In this document: positions 20,260 through 62,099 of the stretch, one piece after another
Position numbering within the stretch: the first letter of the stretch is position 1
Layout: each line of letters opens with the position of its first letter
Source of the DNA: Mobula hypostoma
Lineage: Eukaryota
Reading direction: 5' to 3'
Assembly: GCF_963921235.1 (NCBI RefSeq)
Contig: NC_086106.1
Coordinates: forward strand, 22,692,001 to 22,756,000
Length of the DNA: 64,000 nt
Notes under the pieces: model-generated
Databases searched by the model: none
The model's input: only the letters and a program-made list of their open reading frames with translations
Told to the model about the DNA's origin: nothing
Made by a program: the position numbers and the translations under genes

Positions 20260-21683
20260 CTGTAAAGGGTACCGATGACGTTGACGAAAATCATTCCAGG
20301 TTTGAAAGGCTTGCCATGTAAGGAGCGTTTAATGATTGTGTGTGCATAGTCAAGGGAGTCCAAAGGACGAGGGATGATCACGTTAAAATCTACCCAATGG
20401 TGAAAGCCTACATAGAGTGGGTATAGATGTGATGCTTCCATTGATGGGACAATCTAAGACCAGAAGACGCCAACTCAGAATAAACGGCGTCCTTTTCGAA
20501 ATAAGATGAAGAGGAACTTCTTTCGGCAGAGAGCGATGACTCTCTGCAAATCTTAGCCATACATGGGTGTCGCGGGCAAGACGTTATGCATATTTAAGGC
20601 AAGCATTTATGTATAATAGATAAGTCAGGATTTGAGGGAAAATGGGCAGAAGACAGACGACTGGGGCTGAGAAGAAAATTGAATCTGCCATTAGGAAATG
20701 GGGCACCGGACTCGATGGGTCAAATATCCTAATTCTAATTCTATATATCAATAGCAGAACAGTGAAGATGTTCTAACAGTAAACTATATTCTACATATAA
20801 AGCACACAATATCAACCCGATGCACCAGAAATAAAGAGATCAGGTACTTAATAGGGCAAGGCCTCAAGGTAAGTGAGGACTTGACGCAATTAGTTGAGGC
20901 TAGTTGTTGCTATGCTGGAGCAACTGGCTGTGGTTAAGAGCTGGTGTTAAATACGCAGTAGGTATTATGTTGGATGCTATTGCCAGTTCACTCCTCTTCG
21001 CTATTCCGAAATCGAAAGCTCCCTGTGTTGCTGCACGGACACGAAATGCATTTCGATTTTAGTTTCGGTCAGCGGGGTATGATGCATTTCAGTGAGATAT
21101 ACCAGGTGGTAGGTTGAACTCATAGAACAGTGACATTTGTGGAGAAGTGCGTGTTTTCTTCGATGTCGCGATAGATGTGAATAGAGTGAAAAGTAGCTAT
21201 ACGTCTTGCTTGCCATTGGTGAATTCGATACTGAGATCTGGATATGGTACTACTGTTAAAACTGCGGGACGGAACCAACAGTAATTCCGGCAGTTCCTGT
21301 CACCGTAGATGAGAGGGAGGCAAGTGCGTGCGGAGGAAACAGGAGAGACTTGCAAAGATGTTCAAAGTCTGCCTTATCAGAATAGACTGGATGGGATCAG
21401 TTGAAAATTGTAGGTGGGTGGACATTTGGAAATTCAAACAAACACAAGCGCAAATAGTTTTAATTTTTCAGTGTGAGCTTTGTTTCAATACATGAGGAGT
21501 ATGCGGTGTGCATGGATTATGAAAAACTTTGAGAGCGTTCACAAATGTATCCTCATTCTCAAAGAAATGCATCGAGTGAAAGTTGGCTATGTGGTTTCAG
21601 AAATGGCTTCCCTACAGGAGTCTGGGCCTGATAATAAAATGAAATTATTGGACAAATACCGAAATGAGAAAGAAACTCTAATA
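20260..21683 (+). repeat. Duplicated segment A (direct paralog of 38800-40263)
   Basis: Collinear similarity by eye. Shared strings include aaatcattccaggtttgaaaggcttg, caaggtaagtgaggacttg, ctattccgaaatcgaaag and cacaaatgtatcctcat. Confidence 0.85.
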
Positions 21684-22986
21684 CGTGGGCGTCCTTTTAG
21701 AACCGATATGAGGATGGATTTCTGTGCCCCGAGAGTGGGGAACCTGTGAAATTCTTTGCAACAGATAGCTGCTTAGGCCAAAACTGCACCTATATTTAGG
21801 ACGGAGATTAATGGTTCTTTGATTGGTTCGGGTAAAGGGGATACGGGGAGAAGAACGGTGTATGGGAATAAGAAGAGAAATCGATCAGTCATCATGAAAT
21901 AGCGCCCCAAGCTCAGTGGACCAAAATGGTGTACATGTCCTCCTTTGTTGTTTCATCTCTTCGTCGTATTCACCATATGCAGTGTTTCGGATACTGTGTG
22001 CGCAACATCGGCGAGACTCGACGTAGTTTGTGGGGTCACGTTATCGTACAAATTCGCTCTGTCTGCAACAGGGAGAAGTTCCATGTATCCCAACCATTTT
22101 AAGTTAATTAGCAAATCCCTTCCAACATGGCGTTCATGCCATCTTATTCTGATATCCTGAGTCAACATCCCACAGTCGGTTTGGGTAGCGTCTAACATGA
22201 TGGCATGAACACGGATTTCTCCAATGTTCCGTAATTTGTTCCAGGTTCCGTTTACTCCAAATCTATTTCCCAATTGAGGCTCCCATTTACAGCCCTTTTC
22301 CTCTCTTCACTTGCTTATCACGCTAATCTATGTGGGTGAACATAGATGTACACTCTATATTAAAAGCCCACAACGCTGACTTCACGACAGTAACATCAGC
22401 TGGCATCAGAAGGAATCTAACAGATATCACTCTCTCAGTTATGAGACCTGGCAAGAACACATCTCATGTCATGTGGTCAGGGTGTGTGCACACCAGCTCA
22501 GTGATATCTTTACGAAATTCTTCAAAACATCACTTATTCAGATTTCCGATCATCTGCCATCATCCAAGTAACAAATCGCTAAAAAAAAACTTTGAAATTA
22601 AACGACGAAACAGCTTCAGCCAGATAGCATTGACTCCAGACGCCATGAATTGCATTGCCCACACTGGACACTAAACATCTGGATCATCTAGAAACCTGGT
22701 GTGAAAAAATGGCAGGTGCGATGTGTTCCACTTCAACAACCAGGTTCATCTTACACTGTGAACTGTCGGAAACAGAGGAATGTGGTTGGAAAAAAATACA
22801 GGAATCTGAGCTCATAAGTTTCGAGTTCTTGAAATTTGTATCACAGGTAGATTGGGACTTAAAGGAAGGTTTTGGCACATTAGCTTTGAAGAAACATATT
22901 TTATGGTACAGGAGGCGAGTGGTACGTTAACGTTGTATAAGTGGTTGGTGAGGACTAATTTGGTGAATTTTCTGCAGTTCTGGTCC

Positions 22987-25900
22987 GCAGAAAATTAGAA
23001 ATGGCGGCGGCGCGTATGCATGTGGAGGTTCAGTGTTCTACCAGATTTCGAAAAATAGTGTTTATTATCTGCTTGTTTCCTGCGTGTTCTCTCGATTCGG
23101 CTATGCGAACTACACTTACAACAACCAGTCACGATTGGACATTAACTATCGATGCACTAACACAGTTTTGGACTATCCATTCAACTTCGACCAGCTACCT
23201 CCGACGTTAGTAAGGACACGGCGGACCTGCATTCAACTTGCTCCGACGGAAAGGGCCCGGCGCCGGCTTCGAGACCGTAAACAAAGTTGCGGGAAGCGTG
23301 GAGGTTTGCGTGCTAGCCTGAGGCTAAATCCACACCGGGCAGCGCTACCTATCATCTTCCTCGCTAATGCTCGGTCTCTGACAAAGAAGCCGGACGATCT
23401 ACGGGCTTTGACCCTCACACAAAGAAGGCTGATGGATTGCAACATCCTGTTTTTTTTTTTCTTTATTTATTTCTTTTTTTTTCGGAGACATGGCTAAATA
23501 ATAATGTCCCAAACTACGTGGTGGAACTGGAAGGGCACGCGGTCTTCAGATCAGACAGAGCTGCAACAGCGACGAGTAAAAGTAAGGTGCTGGCTTATGC
23601 AGCTACGTGAATCGATCATGGTGTACTAACTCTACCATTGCTGATACTTACTGCTTTGCTGATCTGGAATACATGATTATTAAGTGCAGACCTTTTTACA
23701 ACCTCGAGAGTTTACATGCATCATTTCGGTCGGAGTTTATGTTGCACCGGATGCTAGTGCTAAAGTCGCCATGAAAGATCGCAGTACTGCTATTAACAAG
23801 CTGCAGACATTGCATCCGAACTGAGTTTTATTGTCGCTGGGGACTTTAATCGTTCTAACCTAAGTGCAGTGCGTACAAGATTTTACCAAAATGTATTATG
23901 TGCTACCGGCGTAATGAAACCTTAGATCCTGTCTACACAAATGTGGCCAACGCTTATAAACCCAAGACCCTCACCCAGCTGGGACAGTCCGATTATCTTT
24001 CATTGTTTCTGCTTCACAAGTATAGTCCAGTCATTAAACGGGTGAAACCTAAAATTATGTCCATTAAGATCTCTCTGGAGGGTCCTGACTCTGCTCTTCA
24101 GCAGCAATTCCAGCACACAGTCTGGAGCGCGGTTGCTGCTCATGCCACCACAGACTCTTAGGTTATCATGGTAACATGGATTTATCTACCAGCTCAGTCC
24201 TGAAGCACATCAACAAGTGTGTAGATAGAGTGACATCAAAAAACAAATATAAGTTTTCCCCAATCAGATTTCGTGGATGAACAGAGAAGTTCGCCTCTTG
24301 CTCAAAGCCAGAGATTCAGCCTTGATGTCTGGAGACTGTGAGGCTTACAGCTCAGCCAGGGCCAACCTAGGAGGAGAATCTCTCGGACTAAACCATGCTC
24401 AGTTAACAAAACCATGCTCTTTGCTTCTGATTAATATAAGGATTTTAAACAACGCTCAGGCTAAACACATACGCAAACAAAGAATCGAGGAGCATTTTAA
24501 CTCCTCGGACCCCCGGCTCATGTGGCATGGCACACAGGTCATTACAGACTTCAAACCATCAAGTACTGTTACTGCTCGTTCAATTACTTCTGCGCTCGCT
24601 TTGACCGAGAGAACAAGGAGATCACCCTCAAAGCGGATCTCCCACCCGGTGAACTGCCTCTCTCACTTTCCACCTCCGATGCTTGCGCCACCCTGAGCAG
24701 GATGAATGTACGGACGATAGCTGGTCCGGATGGAATATCTGGCCTTGTGCTCAGAGTCTGTGCAGAGCAGTTGGCCGGGGTCTTCACGGACATTTGAAAC
24801 CTGTCCCTGAGAAAGGCAGTTATCCCCACAAGCTTCAAGATCGCCAACATCGTGCCAGTGCCGGAGCATTCCACTGCCACGGGACTGAATGACTTCCGTC
24901 CAGTTGCACGCACCTCTATCATTGCAAACTACTATGAGAGACTGGTCCTATCACATTTGAAATCCTGTCTGTCCTCTACCCTGGACCACCATAAATTTGT
25001 CTATCGTACCACAGGTCAACAGAGGATGCCATCTCCATGGCACTTCGCTGTGTCCTGACCGAACTGGGAAGCCCAAATTCTTATATCCGAATCCTGTTCA
25101 TTGACTTTAGTTCGGCACTCAGTATTGTGATTCCCTCCAAGTTGATCACCAAACTTCGCCAGCTTGGTATCAGCTCATCCCTCTGCAATTGGATCTTGTA
25201 TTTTCTGACTAACGGATCCCAATCAGTTAAGTTAGAAAATCTCTCCTCATCCACTCTCACGCTGAACACTGGCCTGCCTCAAGGCTGTGTGCTGATCCCT
25301 CTTCTGTACTCCCTTTTCACCTCTGACTGCGTTCCTGTACATGGTTCTAACTCCATAATCAAGTTCGCAGACGACAACATGGTGTTTGACCTGATCAGAG
25401 GGGATGACGAGACGGCGTACATGGACAAGGTCCAGCAACTGGCCGCGTGGTGTGCCGACAACAGTCTGGGCCTTAACACCCAGAATTCCAAGGAGATCAT
25501 TGTGGACTTCAGACATTCTAGGAGTCACACTCGCGACGCCATCTACATCAACGGAACTGTAGTGGACGGTGTACCAAGCTTCAAATTCCTTGGTGTCCAC
25601 ATTTCCGAAGATGTCACCTTGTCCCTGAGGTCCTCCATCCTGATCAAAAAGGCGCAACAGCGCTTTTATTTCCTGCGGAGCATCAAGAAAGCTCACTTCT
25701 GTCCCAGGATACTGATAGACTTTTACCGCTATACCATTAAGAGCACAGTCACCAACTGCAAAACAGTGTTGTATGACCATTATCCCGTATCAGACAACAA
25801 AACACTCTAGCATGTGGTCAAAACTGCCCAGCGGATTATCGGTATCCAATTGCCCACGATTGAAAACATCTACCATAAACGTTGGCTGGTCAGGCCGAAA

Positions 25901-26243
25901 AGCGTTATCAAGGGATCATCTCACCCTAAGCATGGAGTTTTTACTCTCCTCCCATCCGGTAGGCAATACAGGAGCTTCCGCTCCCTCACCAACAGGCATA
26001 GGAAGAGGTTCTTTCCTGAGGCTGTGACACTGCTGATGGGCTCATCACAGCGCTAAGTAGTATTGTATCCATATTGTACTGTCTGATTACTTTTATATTT
26101 GTGTGCTGCAGCAATTTTTAGTTCACAGTTATTTTGTAAATCGCACTATTCTTTGCAGTTCTGGTCAGATTCTAACTGCATTACATTGGCTTTGGATCTG
26201 TACTCGGCACAATGACAATGAAGTTGAATCTAATCTAATCTAT
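22987..26243 (+). mobile_element. Rex1/Babar-type LINE, near full length, inserted only in the left duplicate
   Basis: APE start (GGLRASLRLNPHRAALPIIFLANARSL, 23033-23497). RT in ORF 25037-25810 (FIDFSSALS, TGLPQGCVL, SIIKFADD). (AATCT)n tail at about 26226-26243. The paralog reads through the empty site at about 57050. Confidence 0.9.
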
Positions 26244-27189
26244 CAGCTGAAATGGTGTAACTAAGTTTGCAATGGTGCAAAAAACATTTGTAAGAAAGTC
26301 TCCCGGTCTGCCAGACCTGAGTTATGAGGGAAGGTTGAATAAGTTCGGACGTTATTACTCAGAACTTAGATATTTGAGAGGAAATTTGACAGAGGTATAC
26401 AAATTTATGACGATAATGTCGTGCAAACACTAGCTAAGAACACCAGTGACTTCAGGTTTCGTTTTAAGAGTTTATCATGGAGAGTCTGCAGCAGTCTCCA
26501 CCACCACCAGAGCTCTGATTTTTAGGATGTACAGAGCGCATAATCATACAGCAAGATAAACAAATTCACATAGCTTTTTTTTAGCATCCACGCTCAGTAC
26601 ATGATCAATCGTTTAACAGACACTTGAATTATCTCTCAGCGTGAGTCTAACCGTTCTTCCTGATTCCTGCTATCGGGACTCATAATTTACCCGCAGAAGC
26701 ATCCTCCCTCATGGTTACAGAGGCCTTTTTTTTTTTTTTTGAGTTTCTGGTACTGCGGCTATAATCTAAGGTTATTTTCAACATGCATTAACAGCCGTAA
26801 GCCCAGCTTCTCCAGGATTGTCAAGTATACCCATTTGGCTTATATTCACTTAGTTTGGGTGGGAATATAACCAGAATTCATGTGGTAAGGGTGAAACGTC
26901 AAACGTTTCAAGGAAAATTATGAGAAAAGCTCTTCAGTAAGAAGTTGTGAGATTATGTGATGAACCGCCAGCATACATGGTGCAAGTAAACTGGATTTCA
27001 AAGCTAATTAACCTATAGTTAATGACATGGCTTCTGGCGTATGGAGGGCTGTGGTCCGGGTGCAGGAATTTGTTTATGACTGTATGAAATTATACGGTTT
27101 AAAAATCCAAGACCCTGTGACATATGCCATTATACCTAACATGCACCTGGCCACATCACGTTTTTAAAAGAGGGACATCTGTGTCAGAA

Positions 27190-27775
27190 CTTCGTTTCTA
27201 GATTTCAGTTCAGTATTCAACACTATTGTCTCACAGACTTTTCCAGCAGACCCCTACTGCTCGTTCTAAGTTTACTACTGCAAAATTGTACAACACGACG
27301 CTAGATTTTCTAATCAACAAACCACAGATGTTCTGGATGCACAACGTTTCGCCATCTCCAGCATCTTTACTCGTTTTCCACGGGAATTATTTGCTGACTC
27401 CACTGTTGTACGCTTGGTTCACAAACGACAACACGGTCAATGTCCTGCACAAAAAAAAAATATTGTCAAATCTGTCGAAGGCACGGAACTGGTGAGACTC
27501 AACACCAATCATCATGAGACGGCCTATAGAGATGAGGTCCGGGAGTCTGCAACTCGGATCCATGTCTCATCAAATGTCTTCATAAAAGTTAACAAAACAA
27601 AGGAGATGGAGATTGACTTTTGGGCAACACGGGATATTCGCACCCCTCACACCATTCTGTGCATTACCACTGCAGCAGTGGAAAATGTCAGCAGTTTAAG
27701 TGGCCGGGGCGCACATCTCTCACAACGTTCATTGTCCCAGAGGAAACATTAAACAACCTGGACATGGTAACAACG

Positions 27776-27850
<75 letters not shown>

Positions 27851-28060
27851 TCCCCCTGAGGGACGGCAGAGAGCTGGATTATGCATATCTATACTCACAT
27901 CTATCTACTGATGCTTATGCGGATAATAATATAACCTGCCGCAACACTGTCTGGCACAGAAACAACTCCGCAGCAGGCAAGGCGGCTCTATGGCGGTTCA
28001 TCAAAACTTTCCAATCACAACCAGCTCTAGCCTACACGCCAACAAGGACATAGATAAATA
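27190..28060 (+). mobile_element. Old Rex1/Babar RT fragment containing a (TA)n(CA)n microsatellite (27776-27851)
   Basis: FLDFSSVFNT-like sequence at about 27195 and KVNKTKEMEIDF. The start of this fragment is shared with the paralog at about 56030-56090. Confidence 0.6.
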
Positions 28061-28614
28061 ATAATGCCAGAAAATCACCAGTGATATCATAAAGGAAACC
28101 ACTCACACAGCTTGTGAACGATTTGAGACACACCCAGCAGGATGGAGGCCACCTAGCTTCCAGGTCGGTATCGCCAGCGTCCAAAATACTTACCTTCGCC
28201 AAGATAAATGAGGCTGGAGAACCGAGCTGGAGCTCAGTTAGGATATATATATATATACACACACACATACCCACACATATACATACGTACATATATATAT
28301 CAGATTTGTCTCTATGATCATACATTCCCAACAACACTCACACTCACACTGCCGAGTGATTGCGGTTTTAATTTTAGCGTTAATAGTTGACATGTTAACG
28401 TATATTTCACAAATTAAATGTGATAGCAGAGGCTCTAGATCTCACTGCGACATTGGAAAGAGCGGTGCGGTTACAGCATTGCTGAGTCTTCACAGACAAA
28501 GGCAAGGGAAACTTCAACAGGTACTCTTAGTGGCGGGAAACCACGTTCAGAAAAGGAATGCACAAATATATCTAGCGGCAAAGATCAAAGCATGGATTCT
28601 ACAGTAAGTGATTT

Positions 28615-28653
28615 TTTTTTTGTACGAGCATTTAACTAGAATGCATCACTGTG
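28615..28653 (-). other. Recombination signal sequence, 23-bp spacer
   Basis: On the minus strand: CACAGTG (28653-28647), a 23-nt spacer atgcattctagttaaatgctcgt, then ACAAAAAAA (28623-28615). Confidence 0.95.
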
Positions 28654-29105
28654 TGCCTTAGGGCACAGTAATAAACTGCAGAGTCGCTCATTTGCAGCTT
28701 TGAGATGGTGACACTGCATAATTTTCTTTCCTTGTCCAGAGAGATTGTGAAGCGGCTTTTGGCAAATTCGGCTTTTTCTTCATATCCCGCAGAATCTTTG
28801 TACAGTATGTACTCGAGACTTTGTTCTGGCCCTTGTCGGTACCAATATAAATGATAGCTGCCCAACCCAGTCTGATAGTTGCAGTGGAAAGTGAAAGCCT
28901 CTTCTTCAGTCTTCACTTTTGCTGGCATTTTCTGAGTGACAGAGTTTGCATGACTTGTATCTGACAAATAGTATAAAAACAAGATATGTTACATTAACAT
29001 GTTTTTTTTTTTCAGAATTCAGTTTCGAGAAGACCTTTAAATTTTTGCTGCGTACAAACCAGTTAACCAGGTTCCGCACATAATCCAGATGACGAATCTC
29101 CACAT
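28654..29105 (-). CDS. TRAV/TRDV: T-cell receptor V alpha/delta gene segment, apparently functional (leader exon 29105-29060, 99-nt intron, V exon 28960-28654)
   Basis: Spliced product MWRFVIWIMCGTWLT-DTSHANSVTQKMPAKVKTEEEAFTFHCNYQTGLGSYHLYWYRQGPEQSLEYILYKDSAGYEEKAEFAKSRFTISLDKERKLCSVTISKLQMSDSAVYYCALR. Phase-1 GT/AG intron, canonical Cys, Trp and YYC, adjacent RSS. The alpha/delta call rests on motif resemblance to TRDV1-like V domains. Confidence 0.92.
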
Positions 29106-29202
29106 TATTTTTGTGAAAAATGGGCTGAATGTTTTTCACAGTAACTAATTCTCGCCAGGATTCAGGACTTTCGAATTGTACTGCTTAAGTGCTAGAATGG
29201 CA

Positions 29203-29222
29203 GGAAATGAAAAGCGACCAAT
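29203..29222 (-). promoter_or_regulatory. Proximal V promoter motifs: ETS-IRF composite-like GGAAatGAAA and CCAAT
   Basis: GGAAATGAAA at 29203-29212 and CCAAT at 29218-29222, about 100 nt upstream of the ATG. Both are retained in the paralog (TTTCATTTCC at 54688-54697, preceded by attgg). Confidence 0.5.
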
Positions 29223-29547
29223 GGGAACGCGGAGTCTTGATGCATGCTCCGCCTATTTGCCCAAATGCGACAGGTCTATGTATCTCAAGGAAAGGACGGA
29301 GACTGCCCTCTGACGATATAAGCCTACAATCGCGAAAATGTTTTTTTTTTTCCGTGGATCAGTCGATCGGCATGCCAAAGAGATACAGTATGCGTTGAAA
29401 ATACTAAAAGAGAGCTTCTTGCCGACTTTCGGCAAAGCACTGATAACTACAAGGGCAAATCTCAGACGGAGGCCGGCTCCTCAGACATATGTTATAGAGC
29501 ACACATCACGGGATTTTTCTTAGACACAAACAATTTGAAAGAAATTG

Positions 29548-29564
29548 ACCACGTCACTGAGGAA
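29548..29564 (-). promoter_or_regulatory. CRE/decamer-like element TTCCTCAGTGACGTGGT
   Basis: Identical over 17 of 17 nt with 54332-54348 in the paralog. Contains TGACG and resembles the AGTGAYRTCA decamer of TCR V promoters. Confidence 0.5.
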
Positions 29565-29718
29565 CTGCAGTTGGGTACGATGTAGATATTGTCCTTTTAA
29601 TAGTGTATAATTAGCTCTGCTTTTCGGTTTCTGTCCTTTTGTACCTGACATTGTTGCATCATTCTCTGCGCATCGGTGTCTGTATCTGTATGTCTGTCTC
29701 TATTAGAGTTCACGCTCA

Positions 29719-29792
29719 CGCGCGCGCGTGTGTGTGTGTGTGTGTGTGTGCGTGTGTGTGTGTGTGTCTTTGTGTGTCTTGGTGTGTGTGTG
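29719..29792 (+). repeat. (CG)n(TG)n microsatellite
   Basis: Directly visible. Its counterpart is the CA-rich run at about 54140-54195. Confidence 0.9.
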
Positions 29793-30339
29793 CTCACATT
29801 CTGTCATTCCTTCATTCACTATCTGTTGATGTTTTAGTGTTAGTTGAGCTGATCCACACCCAGGGTAGCGTTTTGTGTGCACCCGCCACGATAGGTTGCG
29901 GTCGATGGCGTGGAGATATACGGCACAATACGACATACGGTCCCCTAAAATATGTACATGCAATCCTTCAGTCTTTCTACAGCTCAGAGTAAAACCTGCC
30001 CAGACATTCTGGAGAACATTGGACGTGTTGCAGTCAATATGTCAGACATATCTCAGGATGCTGAAAGAAATGTACCATGCCCTTTCAAGTTTGTATATTA
30101 CAATGTTTTGTTTGTCAGTTCTCAACCATTAATTTAGCCGAAACTTGACTCACCCAACCTATTGATGCGGGTATGCTTCTCGCTCCTCCCTGATAAAAGA
30201 CACCAGGGTCTTCGCAACCCATGAAATTCACGGTACAAAGATCGCCTTTTTTAAAGAGTCTCAGTGGGGCACAGTGAAGTTAATCTGTAAGGAGCACAAA
30301 AATGAATGCCGTGCAGGATATCGGTCTTACTCCTTCACT

Positions 30340-30855
30340 TTCTCTCCATCTCACTCAAACTCTCTCGCCCCCTCACAATTTGTACCTGAGTCAATATTCC
30401 TGTATATCTTGCTGTTTATTTCTACTCCCTTTCTTTCTCTATCACTTTCGTTATTTTTCTAGCTGCAGGTCTCCGACTTCCTCTGGTCATCAATATCTCC
30501 CCATTTTCTATAGTCTCTCTCTGTTTCCTTGATATATGTGTTGTTTTTCGTCATTCTCTCTTTTTTTTTCTTCAATACAGGTCGTCTCTTTCTCCAAACC
30601 CCTTTCTCCCTCTCTCTTCCCCCTTACTCTCTGTTATTCTCTCAGTGCCTCTCTCTCCAGCCATTCTATCTACCTGTCGTTTTCTTCGTTTGTCTCGCTG
30701 CTTGACTGCTACGTATCACTCTGCAATTTCTCTTTTTCTATTATTTATCCTTATCTTCCTCCCTTGTCTTCTGTACTCACTGTGTCTGTACGTGTGCTTA
30801 TTGTAGTATCACCTCCCATCCTTACACTCATCTCTGTTGCGTCTGCTCAATAGAG
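30340..30855 (+). repeat. Low-complexity pyrimidine-rich tract (inverted counterpart 53055-53610)
   Basis: C/T-rich on plus here and A/G-rich on plus in the paralog. The two ORFs beginning MNAVQDIGLTPSLSL (30302 plus, 53626 minus) mark the correspondence. Confidence 0.8.
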
Positions 30856-48540: not shown

Positions 48541-48859
48541 TCCAGTTTTCAGGAAATCATTCTGGATAATGACACACTACAGATCAATTCAAAAATCTGG
48601 ATAGGATTGGAGAAGAACAGATAGAATGAGGGTGTGCATTATTGCGGTGAACACCATGAGGGTTCATATTCCTGAGAGATTTCACCTATCAATCTGCCCG
48701 GTTCCTGTTTCTGCAATCCCGTCCTCCTGTGTATGTAGAACGACAGCACGTATATGGGGCCCATTCTGTTCCGGAGGAGATTAGGCCTCTCCAAGTGCTG
48801 CAGAGTGCAGTGCCTGAGTTCTCCATTCCGGCTAAAGTTAGTCTCTCGGACGTTTGGAA

Positions 48860-51800
48860 ATGGTAACAATTGTGCTACATGCGAGTGAGCCGAGGAACAG
48901 AAGGATTATACAGATCAAAACGTGGCTGAGAGGATGGAGCAGGAGGGAGGGCTTGAGGTTTTTAGATAATTCAGCTTTGTTCCAGGGAAGGTGGGATCTG
49001 TTCCGACGGGACGGTTTACACATGAACTGGAGGGGCACTAACATTCTTGCAGGAAAGTTTGCTAGTGCTGCTTGGTGGGGGTGGGGGGTAAACTAAATTT
49101 GCAGGGTACAGGGATACAGAATGTGAGAAAGGATAGCGAAATGAAGTATAAAGGACAGGTGGGGAATACACGGTTCCGGAATATTGAGTGTGAAGTAGAG
49201 AAAGGTGAGGCGGAACGAGTGATAAGGAGGATACATGTGCAGAGGGATGGTCTGACGGGGTATGGAGTTAAATGTGCAGAAAGAGTAAGTAAATTTAAGA
49301 AGGACAACAAAATTCAAGGAGCGTATAGCCCGGTGACAGTTCGGAGAGCTGGACTATTCACAGTAGGCAACGATTTAAATAGAGAGAGGAGAAATGGGTT
49401 AAAAATTCTGTATCTGAATGCACGAAGTGTCAGAAATAAAGCGGATGAGCTTGAAGCTCAGGTGCGAATGGGTACCTGTGATATTGTTGGGATAACGCAA
49501 ACATGGCTGCAGCGGGATCAGACCTGGGAATTGAACGCACAAGGGTATACGTGCTATCGTAGCGACAGAAAGGTGGGCAGAGGGGGTGGGGTGGCCCTGT
49601 TGGTGAGGAATGAGATTCAGTCCCTTGCAAGGGGTGGGGGGGGCATAGAATCAGGAAAAGTAGATAGTGGATAGAACTGAGGAACAGTAAGGGCAAAAAG
49701 ACCCTAATAGGTGTTACCTACAGGACCCCAAACAGTAGCATGGATATTGGGTGCAAGTTGAATAGGGAGTTAACAATGGCATGTGACAAAGGAAATGTCG
49801 CAGTACTTATGAGGGATTTCAACATGCAGGTGATCTGGGAAAATCAGGTTGGTACTGGACCCCAGGATAGGGTGTTTGTAGAGTGCCTGTGGGGTGCATT
49901 TCTGGAGCAGCTTCTACGAGAGCCGACCAGGGATAAGGCTATTCTGGATTTAGAGCTGTGCAATGAACAGGATTTGATAACTTATCTTGAAGTAAAGGAG
50001 CCATTAGGAGGTAGTGTCCATAATATGATAAGTTTTAATCTGCAAATAGAGAGGGATAAGGGCAGATCAGAAGTGTCAGTATTGCAGTTGAGCAAAGGAG
50101 ACAATGGAGCCATGAGGGAGGAGCTGGCCAATGTTGACTGGTCGTATATCCTAGCAGAAAGGACAGTGGAACAGCAATGGCAGGTATTCTTGTGAATAAT
50201 GCAGAAGGCGCAAAATCAGTTCATCCCCCGGAGAAGGAAGGATTCAAAGGGGGGAAAGTCGCCACAGTGGTTGACAAAGGAAGTCAGAGATAGCATAGCA
50301 TTAAAAAAGACGAAGTATAACAGAGCTAAGGTGAGTGGGAATACGGATGATTGGGAATGTTTTAAGGAACAACAGAACTTAACCAGAAAGGCAATACGGA
50401 GAGGGAAAAATGAGGTATGAACGAAAGCTAGCTAGGAATATAAAGGAGGACAGCAAAAGTTTTTTTGAAGGTATGTCAAGAGAAGGAAGACAGTTAAGAA
50501 CAATGTTAGGACTTGAAGAATGCATTGGGAGAAATTGTTATGGGAAAAAGAGAAATGACAGATGAATTTAATAAGTACTTTGGATCTGTCTTCACTAGGG
50601 AAGACACAAACAATCTCCCAGATCTATGGATGGGCCAAGGACATATGGTAGCAGAGGAACTGAAACAGATTGACATTAGGAAGGAAACGGTGATGATTAG
50701 ACTGATGGGACTAAAAGCTAACAAATCCCCAGGCCCAGATGGTCTGCATCCTAGGGTACTAAAGGTGGTGGCTCTGGAAATTGCGGATGCATTGGTGATC
50801 ATTTTCCAATGTTCCTTAGATTCAGGAGCAGTTCGTAAGGATTGGAGAAAGGCTAATGTTATCCCACATTTTAAGAAAGGAGGGAGAGAGAAAACAGAGA
50901 AGTATCGCCCTTTTTAGCTTAACATCAGTAGTGGGGAAGATGCTAGAGTCCATTATAAGATGAAATAGCGACATATCTTGATAGCAGTGATACGACTGGG
51001 CCGAGCCAGCATGGATTTTCCAAGGGCAAATAAGGCTTCACCAATCTATTGGAGTTCTTCGAGGATGTAACCAGGACGATAGACGCGGACAGTCTCCGGA
51101 GCCGTGTACCTTGACGTTCAGAAGGCAGTTGATAAGGTACCACATCGGATTTTGGTTGGTAAAATCAGAGCTCATGGCATTGGGGAGAGGATATTGACAT
51201 GGATAGAAAGCTGGTTGGTGGATAGAAAGCAAAGGGTAGCAGTGAATGGGTGTTTCTCGGAATGGCAGGTGGTGACTAGTGGGGTGCCACAGAGCTCGGT
51301 ATTGCGACCACAGCTGTTTACGATTTACGTCAATTATTTAGAGGAAAGCATTTGCTGATGATACTAAGCTGGGTGGTACTGTGACGTGATGAGGATTTTG
51401 GGAGAATTCAAGGTGACTGATTGGCTGGCTGAGCGGGGAGAAACTTGGCAGATGGCGTTTAATGTGAATAAGTGTGAGCTTATTCACTTTGGGAGCAAAA
51501 ACAGGAAGGCAGATTATTATCTGAACGCTGTGGAGTTAGATAAGGGAGAAATACAAAGAGATCTGGGAGTACTTGTTCAAGATTCTCTGAAGGTGAATGA
51601 GCAAGTGCTGCAGGCAGCGAAGAAGACTAATGGAATGTGGGCCTTTATTACGAATGGAATTGAGTACAAGAGCAAGAAATCCTTTTGCATTTGTACAGGG
51701 CCCTGGTGAGACCACATCTGGTGTATTGTGTGCTGTTTTGGTCTCTAGGGTTAAGGAAGGACATCCTGGCTGTGGAGGAGGTTGCAGCATAGGTTCAGTA

Positions 51801-52270
51801 GGTTAATTCCTGGGATGTCCGGACTGTCTTACGCAGAGAGGTTAGAGAGACTGGGCTTGTGCATGGTTGAATTAAGGATATTGAGGGGGGATCTGATTGA
51901 GATATATAAAATTATCAAGGGATTGGACAAGATAGAGGCAGGGAATATGTTCCAGATGCTGGGAGAGTCCAGTACCAGAGGGCATAGTTTAAGAATAAGG
52001 GGTAGGTAATTTAGGACAGAGTTGAGGAGGAACTTCTTCTCCCAGAGAGTTGTGGAGATGTGGAACGCGATGCCACAGAAGGCAGTGAAGGCCAATTCTC
52101 TGGATGCTTTCAAGAAGGAGGTAGATAGGTATCTTATGGATAGGGGAATCAAGGGTTATGGGGACAAGGCAGGAAATCGGTATTGATAATAGATGATCAG
52201 CATGATCTCAGAATGTCGGCGCAAGCTTGAAGTGCCGAATGGTCTATTTATGCACCTATTGTCTATTGTC
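48860..52270 (+). mobile_element. CR1 LINE, near full length, inactivated
   Basis: ORF1 esterase-like segment (TWLRGWSRREGLRFLD, DLFRRDGLHMNWRGTNIL). APE motifs LKILYLNARSVRNK and RKVGRGGGVALLV. RT motifs SPGPDGLHPRVLK and YLDVQKAVDKVPH. 3' tail (CTATTGT)n at about 52255-52270. Confidence 0.92.
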
Positions 52271-54797
52271 TAATAGCTTCTAACCAAAATTACCCCTTCA
52301 ATATATCGTGATAAAGCTAAAGTGAGAGGGGAAATGGGCTGGTGAGACAGGTGTCCAAATAGATTTTTGGAATGAGAGCCGAGAAAATTGATCATCGTAT
52401 TCATGATCGTAATAATAATCCCGCTCTCGATACATCTGCCAATCCATTCTCTATGCAATCAATTATATTCAATGTGTCTTCTTCTTGGAATATCCTGAAA
52501 AGTAATGAGAAGGAAAAAGAAAAGAGCAGAAAAAAAAAAAAACGGCAACTCCGGCAAAGCACATTTGGAGATGCAATGTGCTACTTTAGTAGATGCGGGG
52601 GACTGCCTAACTAACCTTGAGCCACGCTGTCCCTGCAACTAAAGTGAAAAATAAGTACTTCAATAATGATCATGGAACATTTTCCTATGAACCCACCCCG
52701 TACATCTTTGGATTGCGAAGGAATCCACTGTCTCCGAGGAACCCCCACGTATCGACCATGGGGCCATACAGAACATCACAGCGCCACAAATGAACAACGA
52801 AGTCCAATATAACACAACTGTAGCAGAGCCGTGCCATCCACGAGCCTACCGGGCGTTCAAGTGGATAGACTGACGGAAAAGTAATGAAAGAGAGGGAAGA
52901 GAAGTTCGTTTTTTAGGAAGAAAAGAAAGGAAATAGAGAGGAATAGACATGAATGTCGAGTGTTGGAGGGATAACGATTTAGTTTAATGTCCTATCGTTA
53001 GGAAATTCTCAGTGGGAGAACATCGACAGTCAGAAACTATATATGGAAATATTGCCGGGGCAGAAGGCTCAAAGGGATAGAAAAAGAAATGAGAGAAGGT
53101 TTGGAAGTAATACAATAAACACACGCACAAACACAAAGAGTACGGAAGGCGAGAGAGGAAGAGAGAGGGTAAATAACGGAAAAGAATAAATTACAGACAG
53201 ATACGTAGCAGACAATGAGCGAGACAAAAGACGAAAAAGACAGGTAGATAGAATGGCCGGAGAGCGAGGCACTGAGAGAATAATAGATTGCGGGAGTAGA
53301 GCGAGAGAGTGGGAGATAGGAAGAGAGGGAGTTGGAGAAAGAGACTATCTGAAATAAAAGTAAGAGAAATTAAAAAATAAATAAAAGTACACATATATCA
53401 AGGAACCAGAAAGAGACAGTGGAAAATGGGGAAATATTGATGGCTTGAGGAAGGCAGAGACCTGGATGTAGAAAGATAACGAAAGTGATGGAGAAAGAAA
53501 GGGAGCAGCAATAAACAGAAAGATATACAGGGATATTAACAGGTAGAAATTGAGAGGGCAAGAGAGAGTTTCAGCGAGCTGGAGAGAAAGGGAAGGAGTA
53601 AGACCTATATCTTGCACGGCATTCATTCTTTGTGCTCCTTACAGATTAATTTGGTAGTGCTGCACAGTGAGACTCTGTAAAATGGACAATCTTTATCCCG
53701 TGGAGCTGATGCACTCCTGGGTTGTCGAAGATTCTGGTGTCTTTTACCACGGAGGAGAGAGGAGCGTATCCGCCGCAATACGTTGGGTCAGTCAAGTTTT
53801 GGCTAAATTAGTGGTTGAGAACGGATAGAGAAAACATTGAAATGGCATATACATTTTTTTCAGCATCCTGAGCTATGGCCGACATATCCGCTGCAATATG
53901 TCCAATGTTATCCAAGATATCTGGTCAGGTTTAAGCTGAGCTGCAGAAAGTTTGAAGGATTACATGTATAAACTTTAGGGGCACCTCTGTCGTATTGCGT
54001 CTTATATCTCCACGCCATCCAACTCAACTTATAGTATAGGGTACACACAAAATGCTACCCTGGGTGTTGCTAAGCTCAATTATCACTGAAATATCAACAG
54101 ATAGCGAATGAAGGAATGACAGGATCTGAACACTCACACAAAGACAAGGAAACACAAACACACACAGACTAACACACACACACACATACAAATGCGCGAG
54201 CTCTAACAGAAACAGACATGCAGATACCGACAGCGATGGGCAGAGAATGAAAGTGCGAAAGATTGAAACCGAAAAGCAGAGATATTTATGCAGTACTATA
54301 TGGACATTAGCTCCATGACACTGAACTGCGGTTCCTCAGTGACGTGGTGAATTACTTTCAGTATTTTTGGAAAATCAGTAGATATGTGCTGTATAACATA
54401 TGTCCAATGAACCGACGTCCGTCTGAGATTTGCTCTTGTAGTTATCGGTGCTTTTCTGAAAGTCGGCAAGAAGTTATCTTAGTATTTCCACTAGAAATCG
54501 CTGTGGCATGTCGATCGACTGTGCCACGGAAAATAAAGGTTTTTCGACATCTGCAGGATTATGTCGTCAGAGGGCTGTCTCAGTCAGCGATCGGGCTGTG
54601 ACGCTCTTTCTCGGAGGTACATAGACCCGTCGCATCTGGGGCAATAGGCGGAGCATGTCTCAAGAGGCCGCGTTTCCATTGGGTTCTTTTCATTTCCTGC
54701 CCATTATATCACTTAAACAGTAGAATTCAGAACCTCCTGAATCCTGGCGACAATTTATTGAGGAGAAAATCATTCAACTCATTCTTTATAAAAAATA

Positions 54798-55241
54798 ATG
54801 TGGTGATTCGTCATTGGGATTGTGTGCGGAGCCTGGTTAACTGGTTTGTGCGCAGCAGCCAATACAAAGTTTTCTCCAAACTGAATTCTGAAAAGTACTT
54901 CACTATAACATTTCATGTTTTGTCTTCTTTTTAGATAGGAGTCATGGAAACTCTGTCACTCAGACAATGTCACCAGAAGTGAAGACAGAAAAAGAGGCTG
55001 TAAATTGAAGCTGCACCTATAATACTACATGGGGCAACTATTTTTTATGTTGGTACCGACAGAGGTTAGAACAAAGTCTCGAGTACATACTGTACAAACA
55101 TTCTAGTGGAACTGAAAATAAAGCCGAATTTACCAAAAGACGGTTCAAGGCCTCTCTGGTCAAGGGTGGAAAATTATACCGTGTCACCATCTCAAAGCTG
55201 CAAATGAGCGACTCTGCAGTTTATTTCTGCGCCCTATGCCG
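54798..55241 (+). pseudogene. TRAV/TRDV: TCR V alpha/delta pseudogene, paralog of 28654-29105 (leader 54798-54843, V exon 54935-55241)
   Basis: Leader begins ATG TGG TGA (stop at 54804-54806). The V exon has an in-frame TGA at 55006-55008. Otherwise collinear without indels (57 mismatches in 307 nt, about 81%, manual count), with WYRQ and DSAVYFC intact and splice sites preserved. Confidence 0.93.
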
Positions 55242-55280
55242 CACAGTGATGTATTCTACTTAAATGTTCATACAAAAAAA
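55242..55280 (+). other. Intact 23-spacer RSS of the pseudogene
   Basis: CACAGTG (55242-55248), 23 nt, then ACAAAAAAA (55272-55280). Confidence 0.95.
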
Positions 55281-55801: not shown

Positions 55802-58486
55802 TTTTCTCTCTCCGTCTTTTTCTCTTTTGATCTCGCCGTTGATCTCTCTCTCTCCCGCTTCCCATTCTCCCGCTACCAATTAAGCTCTGTCTCTATTCAG
55901 TAGCCTCTGTGAGGCTAACTAACTATCCATAGTTTCTAGGTCAGGAAGTCCGCATTGTTTTGTACAGTTTTGCAGTAGTATACTTAGAAAGAGCAGTAGA
56001 GGACTTCTGACAAAGGTCTGTGTGGCAATAGTGTGGAATACCGTACTGAAATCTAGAAACAACATTCTGACATAAATGTCCCTCTTTTAAACATATCATT
56101 TGGCCAGGTAAATATTAGGTATAATGGCATATGTTACAGGGCCTTCAAGTTATAAACCGTATAAAGTCATAGAGTCATAAACTACTTCGTCGTTTCTCCC
56201 TGCACCCGGACCACAGCCCTCCATACACCAGAATTCATGTAACTGTCCACACTTAGCTTAGATTTGAAAAATGAGTTTACACGCACTATACATGCTGGCA
56301 GCTCATCACAAAATCTCACGACTTCTTAGTGAAGACGTTTCCTCTCACGTTTGCTTGAAACCTTTTGACATTTCAGCATTAATTCTTTATCATGGCTATG
56401 TTAATCCTTAACATGGCTTCTGGTTATATTCCCACCCAAGCTAAGTGAATGTAAGCCAGATAGTGATACCTGACACTTTGGAGAATCTGAGCATGTTGAG
56501 AATAATCTTGGATTATAGGTGCTCCAGGAACTCCAAAAAAAATTAGATACTAGGCCTCTGGACCCAGGAGCGATGATGCCGCTAGTGTAAATTATGAGTT
56601 CCGATAATAAGAATCAGGAAGAACTGTTAGAATCAGGCTGAGAGATAATTCACGTGCCTTTTAAACGATTGATCATGTACTGACAGTGGAATGCCAAAGA
56701 GTTATGTGAAGATGTTTGTCTTACTGTATGAATATTAGCTCTGTACAACCTAAACAAAATCAGAGTTCTGGTGGCTGTGGAGACTACTGCAGACTCTCCA
56801 TAATACCATGTAAGTAAACCCTTAAAACGAAACTCGAAATCACTTGCGTTCTTAGTTTGTGTTTCCACGACAATACCCTTCAAGAATTTTCTTAACTCTG
56901 TCAAATCTCCTCTCAAATATCTAAGTTCTGAGGAAGAAAGTGCTAACTTATTCATTCTTTCCTCGTAACTCAGGTCTGCAAGATGGGAACAATTTTATAA
57001 ATATCCTTTGCACCATGTCAACCTACTTACACACTTCCAGCAGTTAGCTGGCCAGAACTACAGGAAAAACGGCAAATTAGTCCTCACAAACGCCTCATTC
57101 AACTTTAACGTATCATCCCGCTGTTGTACCATATATTATGTTTTTTTGAAAGCTAATGTGCCAAAATATTCTTTTTTTTTCAAATATACCTGTGATACAA
57201 TTTTCAAAGAATTAAGAAATTATGATCTGAGATTCCATTTGTTTTCAACCATATCCTTTGTTTCCTACCGCTCGCAGATTAACTTGGCTGGTGAAGTGGA
57301 ACACATCGTAACTGATATTTTTCTTACCAGGTTTACAGCTGATCCAGATCTCTCTACAGTCCATGATAACAGGCCACGCTGTCCAGCAAACCTCAATCTT
57401 GTAGTCATCAGCAAATCTTTTATCCAGCTAACCACACTTACAATCGGATTGTCGATATAGGTTGCAGACAACCCCACTCCGGTACTTCAGCAGTCGCAGT
57501 GCTCCCATTGGAAAGGCACCATGTAGTCTCCCTTTGTGGATTCCCTCAGAAATCCAGTGCCTTATCCAATTTAATACGACTGAAACTTCCTGACCTACTT
57601 CCATGTGGGAGCTTGTCAACGGCCTTGCGAAAGACAATGTAGACAACATACATTGCCTTGCCTCCATAAATAGCTCTGGCACTTTTTTCTTGAGAAATTC
57701 ATTAATATTGGTGGGTCACGGCCTTCCAAGATCGAAAACAGCCTGCGTGTCGCATATGCGTCGGTGTCTGTCCAAATACTTATGATACGGACGCAGAAAG
57801 CTCGCTAACGTGGAGCGATTCTGTCGTTCAATATATTGGTTAGTGCCCAGTGTGGCCAACAATTCAAAGCAATTCATGGCGACTGCAGTCAAAGCTACCG
57901 GGCTGTAGTTGTTTAATCGTTTAGTTTCTAAGTTTAGAGAGATTTGTTACTGGAATGATGGCGGATGATCCTAAGTCTGTATAAGTGACGTTCTGAAGAA
58001 GTCCGCAAAGAATCACTGAGCAGTTGTGCACACATATTAAATACTTGACCTGAGATGTGTTCTTGCCAGTTCTGATAACTGAGAGTGATCTGTTAAATTC
58101 CTTCTGATGCCAGCTAATGTTACAGACCTGAAGGCAGCGTTGTTAGCTTTTATTATGGAGCGTACATCGATGTTAACCAACATAAGTGATAAGCAAGTGG
58201 GGAGAGGAAAGAGGCTATGAGTGGTAGCCTGAAATGCGGACTGGATTTGGAACAAACGGAATCTGGACCAAGTTACGGGAAATTTGATACATGAATGTTC
58301 ATGTCTCCATGTGAGACGCTACACAAACCGAATGTGAGATGTTGCCTCATGATAGCAGAATAATTGGGCATTGACGCCATGTTGGAAGGGATTTGGAAAA
58401 GACATTAAAATTGTTGGGATACATTGGAATAATTCTTGTTGCAGACAGAGTTAATTTGCACATAACGTGGCCCCACACCCTACGTC

Positions 58487-60053
58487 TGTCACAGTGGGGT
58501 GCTGGGAACGGACCCAAATGCGAGACACAGACACTGAAATACAAGGAACAGGAATTGACTAGAGTAGGGACGTGACAGGAAACAGGGAAGGAGTAGGGAC
58601 AAGAACGCAGACTTGAGCTGGGGAAAGCGGAACCAGGACTATAACGCATGGACTAGGAGACAAGACTTCAACTCCGAGCCCGAGACTGGACAAGGACCCA
58701 GAACCCGGGTCTTCCCACGGGCTCGGATCCCAGAACTAGGCAACCATATGACATGGCTTCAGGGCAAGACGTAGCTGGGGACTAGATGCCTGAGCTTGGA
58801 GACAGGCTGGGTCTTTGCTCTTGAGGTTTGAGGCTGGGGCCTTGTGCCTTGAGATTGGAGTTTCGAGGCCGGCTAGTGTCTTGGGACTTGAGTCTGGAGG
58901 TTGGAGGCCGGCTGGGGTCTTGGGTCTTGCGTCTGGTGCTTGGAGACCGTCTAGGGACTTGGGTCTTGAGTCTGCAGCTTGGAGGTCTGCTGGGGTCTTG
59001 AGTTTTGAGGCTGGAGCTTGGAGGCCGTCTGGGGCCTTGGGTCTTGAGTCTGGAGCTTGGCTTGGGATCCTCGAGGCAAGTGTTCTTTGAGCTTGGCTGG
59101 GATCTTCGAGGCTAGTGTTCTTGGCCCATAGCTAGGGATCCTCGAGGCTAGTGTTTTTTTTTTTTTTTTTTTTTGGAGCTTGGCTGGGATCCTCCAGGCT
59201 AGTGTTCTTGGAGCTTGTGCTGGGATCTTCGAGGCTTGGGTTCTTGGAGCTTGGCTGCAGGATCATCCTCTTGAAATGCGGAGACTGATAACTCGGAGGC
59301 TGGAGCTTGGAGACAGACTGGGAATTGTACATTAACAGAGAGCCGGGACATATCCTTCGAAAAGCCGCGACTCACCTTTAACTCGACATTAACACGTGAC
59401 TGGACAGAACAGAGACATAGAGCCAGGACTCATCCATAGACAAGCCGGGACTCAACTTCATCTCCACACCAAGTTGGGACGGGTCCCTCCATCAGGTAAG
59501 GACAGAAAGGCCGGACGTACCCAATAGAGGCAAAAACGAGACAAGAGAGATCGACCCGCAGGGTAATGTCAAGACGGCCTGACTTACCCCACGGCGGCGA
59601 GGACAAGAAGAGACAAAGACCAGAGAACGGCAGACAGTTCCATCTCCGCTTCAGGGTTGCTCCGAGTTGCAGTTACAGCCAGCAACCTCTGGGGAAACAG
59701 CCGTATGCCTACCTAGCTCAGAGTGGCTGTCGGCCACTCAGCTGGCTCGGGAAACAGCCGAATCCATACCGTAAAGACTATTCTAACGAGTGGCAACAAG
59801 GCTCCTTGAGCGGTGGTGCTCCAACCAGGACGAGAGATTACAAATGGTTTCACCAGCCTTCCATCAGCAGGTTGCTCGAAGGGCGACTTTCAAGACAAAC
59901 CAGCAGCCCACATTCAACCCCAAAGCCCCAAGATGAGAATCAGGTGCCTACGCTTAACTCAATCAAACGAGGGACAGCTGGAAGACCAGGAATCCTGAAT
60001 CCAGGGACCCCACCGTGAAACGGAATGCGGACTTCTCGGACCGGACCATGACA
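58487..60053. mobile_element. TG...CA-bounded LTR-derived insertion (1567 bp) specific to the right duplicate
   Basis: Termini TGTCA and TGACA. Flanks ACGTC (58482-58486) and ACGTT (60054-60058) form a probable 5-bp TSD. The left paralog has a single GACGT at about 22020. Confidence 0.8.
58865..59255 (+). repeat. Two adjacent minisatellites: 5 x 39 nt (58865-59059), then about 5 x 35-36 nt interrupted by poly-T
   Basis: Units resemble gaggccggctggggtcttgggtcttgagtctggagcttg and ctgggatcttcgaggctagtgttcttggagcttgg. Confidence 0.9.
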
Positions 60054-60399
60054 ACGTTGAGTCTCCTGGATGTTGTGCGCACCGTATCAGAAACACTGTA
60101 TGCAGTGAATAAGACAAAAAAAAAATGAAAGAACAAAGGATTAGATTTGCAACACATTGATCCACATATCTTTGTCCGCGATTTCATGATGGCTGATCGA
60201 TTTCTCTTCTCATACTCAATCACCGTTCTTTTCCCCGTATCAATTTTAGCTTGAGCAATCAAGAATTTATTAACCTCTGTCTTAAATATAAGTGCAGATT
60301 TGGCCTAAGCAGCTATCTGCTGCAAAGAACTCCGCAGGTTCCCTTCTCTAGGGCCTAATAAATCCATCTTCATCACCGTTCTAAAAGGACGCTCATGTA

Positions 60400-62011
60400 C
60401 AGGGATATGCAAATGTTTGGGCACCCCTGCTCAAAATTTCTGTTACTGTGAATAGCTAACTAAGTAGAAGATGAACTGTTCTCCAAAAGTCACAAAGATA
60501 AAGATGTAAGATTCCCTTCAATACTATAACAAGATTAGTGTGTTATTTTCTTGTTTTGTACGATTTTAGGGTGACAAATAGGAAAGGAGCACTATAGGCA
60601 CTCTAAGGGATTCGAGCTCTCAGATTACTCTTACCAAGTTCTCAGAACTTAATTCGCTTGTTCGGACTATGGCTTGCTCACAGTCATCGTTAGTAAAGCC
60701 CAGATTTTGCAAATTTCAAAGTTTATAAAAAACATTGACTCCTCAAACTATGTCCCAACAATCAGCAGCCGTGGGCTTCCCCAAGCGGCTGTCTAGCACT
60801 CTGACAATTAAAATAATTGATGACCACAAAGCATGGGAAGCCTATAAGATGATAGCAAAGCGTTTTCATGTAGTCGTTCCTCAGTTTGTAATGTAATTAA
60901 GAAATGGAAGCTAACAAGAACGGTGGAGGTCAAGATAAGGCCTGGAAGACCAAAAAAAAAAAAAAACTTTCCGAGAGGACCACTCGCAGGATTGCGAGAA
61001 AGGCAAATCGAAATCCCTGTCTGACTGCAAAAGACATTCAGGATGATTTAGCAGACTCTGGAGTGGTGGTGCACTGTTGGACTGTGCAGCGACAACTGCA
61101 CAAATATGACCTTCATGGAAGAGTCATCAGAGGAAAATCTTTCCTGCGTCCTCAGCACAAGGTTCAGCGTCAGAATTTTGTAAAGAAACATCTAAACAAG
61201 CCCGATGCATTTTAGAAACAAGTCCAGTGGAGAGATGAAGTAAAAATACAACTTTTTGGCCGCATTGAGCAAAGGCATGTTTGAGAAAAAAGGGTGCAGA
61301 ATTTCATGGAAAGAACAAATGTCCAACTGTTAAGCGCGGGGGTGGATCGATCACGCTTTTGGTTTGTGTTGCCCTCACTGGCACGGGGAACATTTCATTG
61401 GTAGAGGTAAGAATAAATTCAACTAAATACCAACAAAATCTGGAAGCAAACATCACACCGTCTGTTAAAAAGCTGATATGAAAAGTCGATGGTTTCTGCA
61501 ACAGACAATGATCAAAAACACAACTCAAAATCCACAAAGGCTACCTCGAGGCGCAAGTTGAAGGTTTTGCCATGGCCAGCACAATCCCCCGACCTAAACA
61601 TCCTCGAAAATCGGTGGATAGAGCTCAGAAGAGCAGTGCATGCAAGACGGCCTAAGGATCTCATAGAACCAAAAGTCTTTTGCAAGGAAGGAAGGGCAAA
61701 AATCCCCCAGACAAGAATTCAAAGACTCTTAGCCGGCTACAAAAACCTTTTACAAGCTGTGATACTTGCCAACGGGGATGATATAAGTGCTGACCATGCA
61801 GGATGCCCACACCTTTGCTTCGGGCCCTTTCCCTTCTTTGTTATTTTGAAACTGTAAAAGATGGAACATTAAGTAATCCTGCTTAAAATATTAAAGAAAT
61901 ATTTCATCTCTAACTTCATGCCTTTTAGGTATCAGGTAATCTTGTACTGTCTTAGCTATTCACAGTAACAACAATTTTGACTAGGGATGCTCGAACCTTT
62001 GCATGCCACTG
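60400..62011 (+). mobile_element. Tc1/mariner DNA transposon (1612 bp) with an inactivated transposase
   Basis: TA flanks at 60398-99 and 62012-13. Imperfect long TIRs (CAGGGATATGCAAATGTTTGGGCACCC versus CAGTGGCATGCAAAGGTTCGAGCATCC). Transposase fragments RPGRPK, WRDEVK, PTVKRGGGS, NDQKHNSK and WPAQSPDLNILEN. Confidence 0.93.
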
Positions 62012-62099
62012 TATGTATTTTGTTACATCCCTCAAGGAATTCCACCTAGCTTCAATGGCAAGGCCTGGCACTCACAAAGCTTGGCTGTCTATCCGTAAG

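Follow-up and report, generated by a model that had tools for sequence, protein, structure and literature searches.

A V-gene unit and its split copy

The window analysed here, a 64,000-nucleotide stretch of Mobula hypostoma DNA (contig NC_086106.1, positions 22,692,001 to 22,756,000), carries two copies of a unit with a variable (V) gene resembling those of the T-cell receptor alpha and delta loci (TRA/TRD), and the second of these copies is split in two and partly inverted at the terminus of a decayed Tc1-like transposon. The V gene of the unbroken copy, V1 (28654–29105, minus strand), is intact: it has a leader exon (MWRFVIWIMCGTWLT), a GT donor, an intron and a V-set exon with the conserved Cys...W...YxC pattern that ends in YYCALR, and it is directly followed by a perfect recombination signal sequence (RSS) with a 23-base spacer (28615–28653, minus strand; CACAGTG, 23 bases, ACAAAAAAA). 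Among named proteins it comes closest to teleost “T-cell receptor alpha/delta variable” entries with a PF07686 domain, at 35–46% identity, and a protein database search with V1 returned nothing above 54%. The paralog in the other copy, V2 (54798–55241), lies on the plus strand together with its own 23-spacer RSS (55242–55280, plus strand), the heptamer and nonamer of which are identical to those of V1. Judged by a TGA at leader codon 3 and another TGA in the V exon, V2 is a pseudogene. The strands of both V genes and of their RSSs bear out the flip of V2 relative to V1 that a preliminary description of this DNA had proposed.

Self-BLAST of the window places one copy, unit 1, unbroken at 20257–30838, and the second copy in two parts, A′ and B′. 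The left part of unit 1, A (20257–21683, plus strand), begins within the tail of a CR1-like long interspersed nuclear element (LINE; 20257–20742) and is matched in direct orientation by A′ (38793–40263, plus strand), which terminates in ...GACTCATA and whose left-edge LINE reaches upstream to approximately 37254. The right part, B (21682–30838, plus strand), is matched in inverted orientation by B′ (minus strand), which runs from 60399 down to 53082. At the level of single alignments, 20257–21678 pairs with 38793–40260 on the plus strand at 77% identity, and five colinear blocks pair on the minus strand at 75–78% identity (21682–22027 with 60399–60051, 22020–22677 with 58486–57837, 22677–22988 with 57349–57047, 26240–27329 with 57047–55925, and 28246–30838 with 55634–53082). 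The sole interruptions between B and B′ are insertions specific to one copy, namely 22989–26239 (a CR1-like LINE) and 27330–28245 in B, and 57350–57836 and 58487–60050 in B′.

Both parts of the second copy end at a single site of unit 1, the TA dinucleotide at 21682–21683. Base-level alignment and direct reading give AACTCTAA-TA-CGTGGGCG for unit 1 across this site; A′ terminates with GACTCA-TA, its TA at 40262–40263, and is followed by the unrelated TTGTTGCAGG, and B′, read on the minus strand, begins with TA-CATGAGCG, its TA at 60399–60398, immediately past the end of the Tc1-like element. The endpoints of A′ and B′ overlap by exactly this TA, which in unit 1 is present once and without Tc1. 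We estimate the chance that two independent truncations would meet within ±2 bp in a unit of 10.5 kb at about 5 in 10,000. Self-BLAST and base-level alignment thus agree with the earlier claim that the second copy is broken and inverted at one TA, with A′ in direct orientation up to 40263 and B′ inverted from the TA at 60398–60399, and both parts meet the TA of unit 1 at 21682–21683: copy 2 was cut in two after the duplication, and B′ was inverted.

The split-site TA lies inside an old, shared, 5′-truncated CR1 tail, as seen from an alignment with six other CR1 tails and from the codons that cross it (T-L-I-R-G-R-P-F-R, against S-L-R-I-R-G-K-S-F-R in CR1). Going by the endpoints of the BLAST alignments, the break had seemed to coincide with the 5′ limit of a LINE fragment; this was rejected because the CR1 tail runs some 10–45 nt upstream of the TA into both A and A′. 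A small difference between the copies stands next to the site, where unit 1 has CTC-TA-A-TA-CG (21676–21683) and copy 2 has CTC-A-TA-CA, so that unit 1 holds an extra TA one base upstream. An ordinary indel could account for this extra TA. A less likely source is a worn excision footprint, in which case Tc1 would have been inserted before the duplication.

A′ and B′ are equally diverged from unit 1. The Kimura two-parameter (K2P) distance between A and A′ is 0.234 ± 0.015, that of the B blocks is 0.215–0.262, and the standard errors overlap, which argues that both parts derive from the same duplication event and agrees with the single duplication that had been claimed. This dates the duplication, roughly, to 0.117 substitutions per site per lineage. 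On the left, the homology begins (at 20257 in unit 1 and 38793 in copy 2) inside a CR1-like LINE whose upstream continuation is found in copy 2 only (37254–39303), and since the element is complete only there, copy 2 is probably the parent copy. The word “tandem” used in the preliminary description had to be given up, as the copies lie 8 kb apart and no homolog of the spacer (30839–38792) follows B′ in the self-BLAST, where the only match is a wrongly oriented CR1 with 69% identity; the event is better termed a direct segmental duplication of the dispersed kind. The CR1 at 48871–52313 was considered as the positional homolog of the CR1 at 31453–33310 and set aside, its orientation being wrong for the inversion model and the identity being 69%, and we take the two as independent insertions.

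The insertions specific to one copy have features of their own. The 1.56 kb insert of B′ at 58487–60050 stands directly behind the shared CR1 tail and contains an internal, diverged direct repeat (58775–59143 and 58919–59267) and an open reading frame (ORF) of 150 amino acids without a Pfam match. Within the 3.25 kb CR1-like LINE insert of unit 1, which gives RVT_1 and ALKBH8_N matches, the segment 22999–25333 has an inverted partner at 1–2262. The identity of this pair is 77–80%, a divergence near that of the V-unit duplication, and the partner at 1–2262 runs past the edge of the window; the pair could represent another segmental duplication and not two separate insertions.

The Tc1-like element and the three junctions

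The Tc1-like element occupies 60400–62011 on the plus strand, starts with CAGGG, ends with CACTG and is bordered by TA on either side. The TA between B′ and its left end (60398–60399, junction J3) reads CGCTCATG-TA-CAGGG, and the TA between its right end and the distal flank (62012–62013, junction J2) reads CCACTG-TA-TGTATTTT. An earlier end coordinate of 62013 takes in this second TA; the body of the element stops at 62011 and the distal flank starts at 62014 with TGTATTTT. The terminal inverted repeats have arms of 140 nt that are 72% complementary; the arms align from base 1 and differ at 12 of their first 61 nt. An ORF at 61489–61854 matches DDE_3 with E = 6.4e-6 and 26.5 bits, under the Pfam cut-off of 28.6 bits, and all frames are full of stops and frameshifts, so that the coding sequence is a remnant and not an active gene. 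The self-BLAST found no second Tc1 copy in the window. If the arms were identical at insertion, the 12/61 difference between them gives an insertion age of approximately 0.1 substitutions per site, not older than the duplication at 0.117 per lineage. The split of the duplicate coincides to the base with the Tc1 terminus and its TA, which upholds the proposed break at the Tc1 end, and the four-base relation between CATA at the end of A′ (40260–40263) and TATG at the distal flank (62012–62015) is likewise present.

At the third junction, J1 (40263–40264), A′ abuts a fragment of an L1-like LINE on the plus strand (40264–42642), the reverse transcriptase of which begins just upstream of GKAPRPDGFTAEF. 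Only a few bases separate J1 from the start of the L1 coding sequence, and the element is either broken there or 5′-truncated. An L1 cut by the break would mean that its insertion preceded the inversion. Compared with the majority letters of its family, the L1 copy shows about 218 variant places across a stretch of 5 kb, most of them probably in the 2.4 kb of the L1 itself, which suggests an insertion somewhat younger than the duplication. No target duplication of the L1 was found in 42300–49000, and no poly(A) was seen. This fragment is the sole copy of the abundant L1-like family in the window. Adjoining its 3′ end is a fragment of a Gypsy-like retroelement (42643–46250, minus strand; a weak protease match and RT_RNaseH_2), around which no pair of long terminal repeats was detectable.

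On the other side, the distal flank of the Tc1-like element (62014–62417, minus strand) is a fragment of a CR1-like reverse transcriptase covering approximately amino acids 85–224, with the 3′ half missing. The CR1 homology ends 8–17 nt from the TA on the Tc1 side, and tblastn and k-mer searches did not find the missing 3′ half in 40000–49000. J2 and J3 are precise junctions, and J1 is an imprecise one. The CR1 tail in B′ and the CR1 at 62014–62417 were also considered as one element split by Tc1, as they share a strand and follow each other in the expected order. The true 5′ end of the tail is in A′, however, and approximately 940 bp would be missing, and the likeness was put down to chance.

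The junctions are genuine sequence as far as sequencing reads from two organisms, A and B, can tell, whose runs come from different samples and different studies. Contigs of two organism A runs, X1 and X2, span 39185–40379 across J1 with 0 differences and at full single-copy depth, their depths of 13.7 and 9.9 being those of neighbouring unique contigs. For J2, a 62-base probe (61983–62044) was sampled with two 31-mers, both of which are present in four organism A and four organism B runs; this presence rests on two words, the outermost words of the probe would not be specific for the junction, and the sample of organism A may be that of the assembly itself. The L1-like family is of very high copy number in both organisms, its summed word depth reaching approximately 4 × 10^5. 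Contigs over J1 that are free of mismatches, together with J2 words in two organisms, make an assembly artefact unlikely, a misassembly through this L1 included. Organism B has only 6–8% of the words of the stretch joining A′ and the L1 (39300–41300), yet it has both sampled J2 words; among its matches listed for this stretch are only short contigs at approximately 86% likeness, one of them on A′. The structure of the locus may differ between organisms A and B.

Order of events and rival explanations

A break that is base-exact at the Tc1 terminus, with a new flank that starts with TA, suggests that the DNA broke at the end of the transposon, and from the junctions we infer the following history. 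A single duplication in direct orientation, 7.3 kb in length before later insertions, would have copied the unit with the TRA/TRD-like V gene, copy 2 probably being the parent. Tc1 would then have inserted at the TA inside the old CR1 tail of copy 2, doubling this TA and coming to lie between A′ and B′. A later break at its right terminus, most likely from cleavage by the Tc1 transposase or from a one-ended strand transfer, would have been joined to a TA(TG) approximately 21.7 kb downstream; alternatively, the joining may have been microhomology-mediated, by way of the four-base CATA/TATG match. The segment 40264–62011 would thereby have been inverted and the precise J2, in which the Tc1 end is followed by TA and TGTATTTT, created. 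The left-over ends, namely the TA of A′ and the remaining side of the distal break, would have been sealed by end joining with loss of DNA, giving J1 with A′ against a broken L1. V2 and its RSS would thereby have come to face opposite to V1; V2 is today a pseudogene. The involvement of a transposase is plausible here. We give this order, in which Tc1 first stood between A′ and B′ and a distal TA later received its right end, a probability of about 0.45.

Several points weigh against this history. The distal ends do not match, as the sequence is L1 from 40264 and a CR1 broken near amino acid 224 at 62014, where a clean inversion with two breaks would call for ends that were once continuous; either DNA went missing as J1 was sealed, or there was a third break or a later event, and the clean inversion that had been envisaged has to be dropped. 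J1 carries no Tc1 excision footprint after its TA. This absence, the movement of only one element end and the imprecise reciprocal junction speak against a purely enzymatic route. Tc1/mariner transposases usually cleave both ends in a paired complex, so that a one-ended event is atypical. With the other half of the CR1 not found in 40000–49000, the state before the inversion cannot be rebuilt from the window. Finally, a history of the opposite polarity, discussed below, would fit all four junction sequences equally well.

According to that history, Tc1 inserted first at the TA of the distal CR1, which makes J2 the old junction, while A′ and B′ were still intact as in unit 1. The left end of Tc1 would later have been cut and joined to the TA between A′ and B′, by one-ended strand transfer or by end joining, with inversion of 40264–60397, and the rest of the CR1 would have disappeared as the left-over ends were sealed. 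With the three TAs at the end of A′ and on either side of Tc1, this route arrives at J1 and J3 sequences identical to those of the other one, and the cut in CR1 right beside the TA of Tc1 is explained without an extra assumption. The organism B runs, with both J2 words and 6–8% of the words of the J1 stretch, fit an older J2 as well, if weakly. Set against this, the CATA/TATG match is left to chance, at about 1 in 16, and the CR1 remainder expected at 40264 is absent under this polarity as well. That the old and the new right flank of Tc1 both start with TATG is explained only if Tc1 first stood between A′ and B′, which is a mild point for the order we favour. We regard the reversed polarity as possible although rather doubtful. 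The earlier claim of a Tc1 insertion at this TA followed by an inversion of about 22 kb thus keeps the inversion edged by Tc1, and gives up the preference for its order over the opposite one, given that the same three TAs serve both.

The L1 at J1 suggests another route, in which L1 retrotransposition made or bridged the rearrangement and a broken end at the TA of A′ took up an L1 cDNA by its 5′ end as filler, in place of an older L1 cut by the break. It would then be no accident that L1 coding sequence begins so near J1, and the copy does appear younger than the duplication by its roughly 218 variant places; what makes this route improbable is that poly(A) and target-site duplication were not found, and that the 3′ end of the L1 near 42642 adjoins the Gypsy-like fragment in place of the predicted CR1 remainder. 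The classical route of transposon-mediated inversion, ectopic recombination between two inverted Tc1 copies, would require that the copy at J1 was later lost. With neither Tc1 sequence nor footprint at 40264, no second Tc1 in the window, and a flank at 62014 that is not L1, so that the two flanks are not exchanged halves of one site, we consider it very improbable. The Tc1-like element could, in principle, be a bystander that was inserted at the new junction after an inversion with unrelated breaks: J2 and J3 without Tc1 would read CGCTCATG-TA-TGTATTTT, a normal TA target. The sole Tc1 in 64 kb would, however, have to strike the exact base of the junction, with a chance of the order of 1 in 10,000 or less, and the TA at the end of A′ would be a second coincidence, which leaves the bystander more improbable still. 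Least probable is that there was no inversion at all, whether through a wrong assembly or with A′ and B′ as what is left of two copies truncated separately. In its favour are the many repeats of the region and the chance that the organism A runs come from the assembly's own sample. Against it, read-derived contigs span J1 with 0 differences at full single-copy depth, the J2 words recur in another organism and another study, A′ and B′ end on a single TA, and their divergences are equal.

V orientation and comparable systems

V orientation decides between deletional and inversional joining, and also the facing of a V segment toward any looping elements; the present case is a base-resolved example of a change in V orientation within an antigen-receptor array. 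Inverted V segments are known from antigen-receptor loci, such as human TRBV30, mouse Trbv31, TRDV3 and the IgL clusters of zebrafish. Like these, V2 has a V and an RSS opposite to its neighbour and would rearrange by inversion and not by deletion. The known segments differ in being functional, with inversions whose origin generally lacks base-level resolution, whereas here the origin is resolved and the flipped V is dead. Unit 1, the paralog of the split copy, preserves within the window what the sequence looked like unbroken, a rarity among old inversions.

The practical weight of the case is limited by the state of V2, which keeps the immunological consequence small, by the prior mixture of orientations in this region, and by the fact that transposon-associated inversions are well known; it is a well-resolved further example of this known class of events. 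A V-like relic of another family lies between the two units (35190–35494, plus strand; ...WYRQYPGGYLEFLLL...DTAMFYCVL), its reading frame shifting between the first strand and the Cys region and its downstream side lacking a canonical RSS, and since it is on the strand opposite to V1, orientation was already mixed here. V1 looks like the only usable V in the stretch. The proposal that a transposon set V orientation is weakened by the stops in V2, by the opposite-facing relic at 35.3 kb and by a transposase action that is only presumed. The link to the transposon is strong as a positional coincidence and unproven as a cause, and the transposase step is not provable from sequence.

Rearrangements beside a Tc1/mariner donor site have been described for mobilised Sleeping Beauty in the mouse germline, where deletions and inversions arose around the donor site (PMC1584263). 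The resemblance lies in a cut-and-paste element of the Tc1/mariner type, in a vertebrate chromosome, and in rearrangements next to the donor. The Sleeping Beauty events came from an engineered concatemer and a hyperactive transposase and were mapped by fluorescence in situ hybridization and arrays (PMC1584263), whereas the element here is single, natural and decayed, sits in a wild genome with junctions at base level, and would be causal only by inference. That a one-ended strand transfer of Tc1 into a TA approximately 20 kb away produced a fixed natural inversion, turning a T-cell receptor V, its RSS and anything located behind them against the paralog, is a tentative idea that we consider unlikely. 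If true, the engineered Sleeping Beauty rearrangements would have a counterpart in nature, in a vertebrate, and a cut-and-paste transposon would have reshaped the layout of a locus on which RAG, a domesticated transposase, makes its cuts.

Comparable rearrangements by Ac/Ds and P-type elements occur in plants and flies, and alternative (reversed-ends) Ac/Ds transposition is reported to give inversions in maize and rice (PMC8225341, PMC3239180, PMC1592236). The likeness is in an inversion breakpoint exactly at a transposon terminus and in a new junction with the target duplication of the family. The Ac/Ds route needs two nearby element ends and makes both junctions precise, whereas only one element is seen here and the second junction is imprecise; Ac/Ds also belongs to the hAT superfamily, and the present element to Tc1/mariner. 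Natural inversions in Drosophila have been attributed to Galileo and BuT5 (PMC2775673, PMC3698922). They share with the present case a fixed natural inversion and a DNA transposon at the breakpoints, and differ in having copies at both breakpoints with exchanged target duplications, the mark of ectopic recombination; we looked for this pattern at the present locus and did not find it.

A further pair of short motifs accompanies the V genes. Approximately 35 nt past the V1 nonamer, the minus strand reads GCCGCTAGATAT at 28569–28580, and GCAGCTGGATAT stands at the matching place past the V2 nonamer. Both resemble a weakened CTCF core, and the inversion would have flipped the copy of V2 along with V2.

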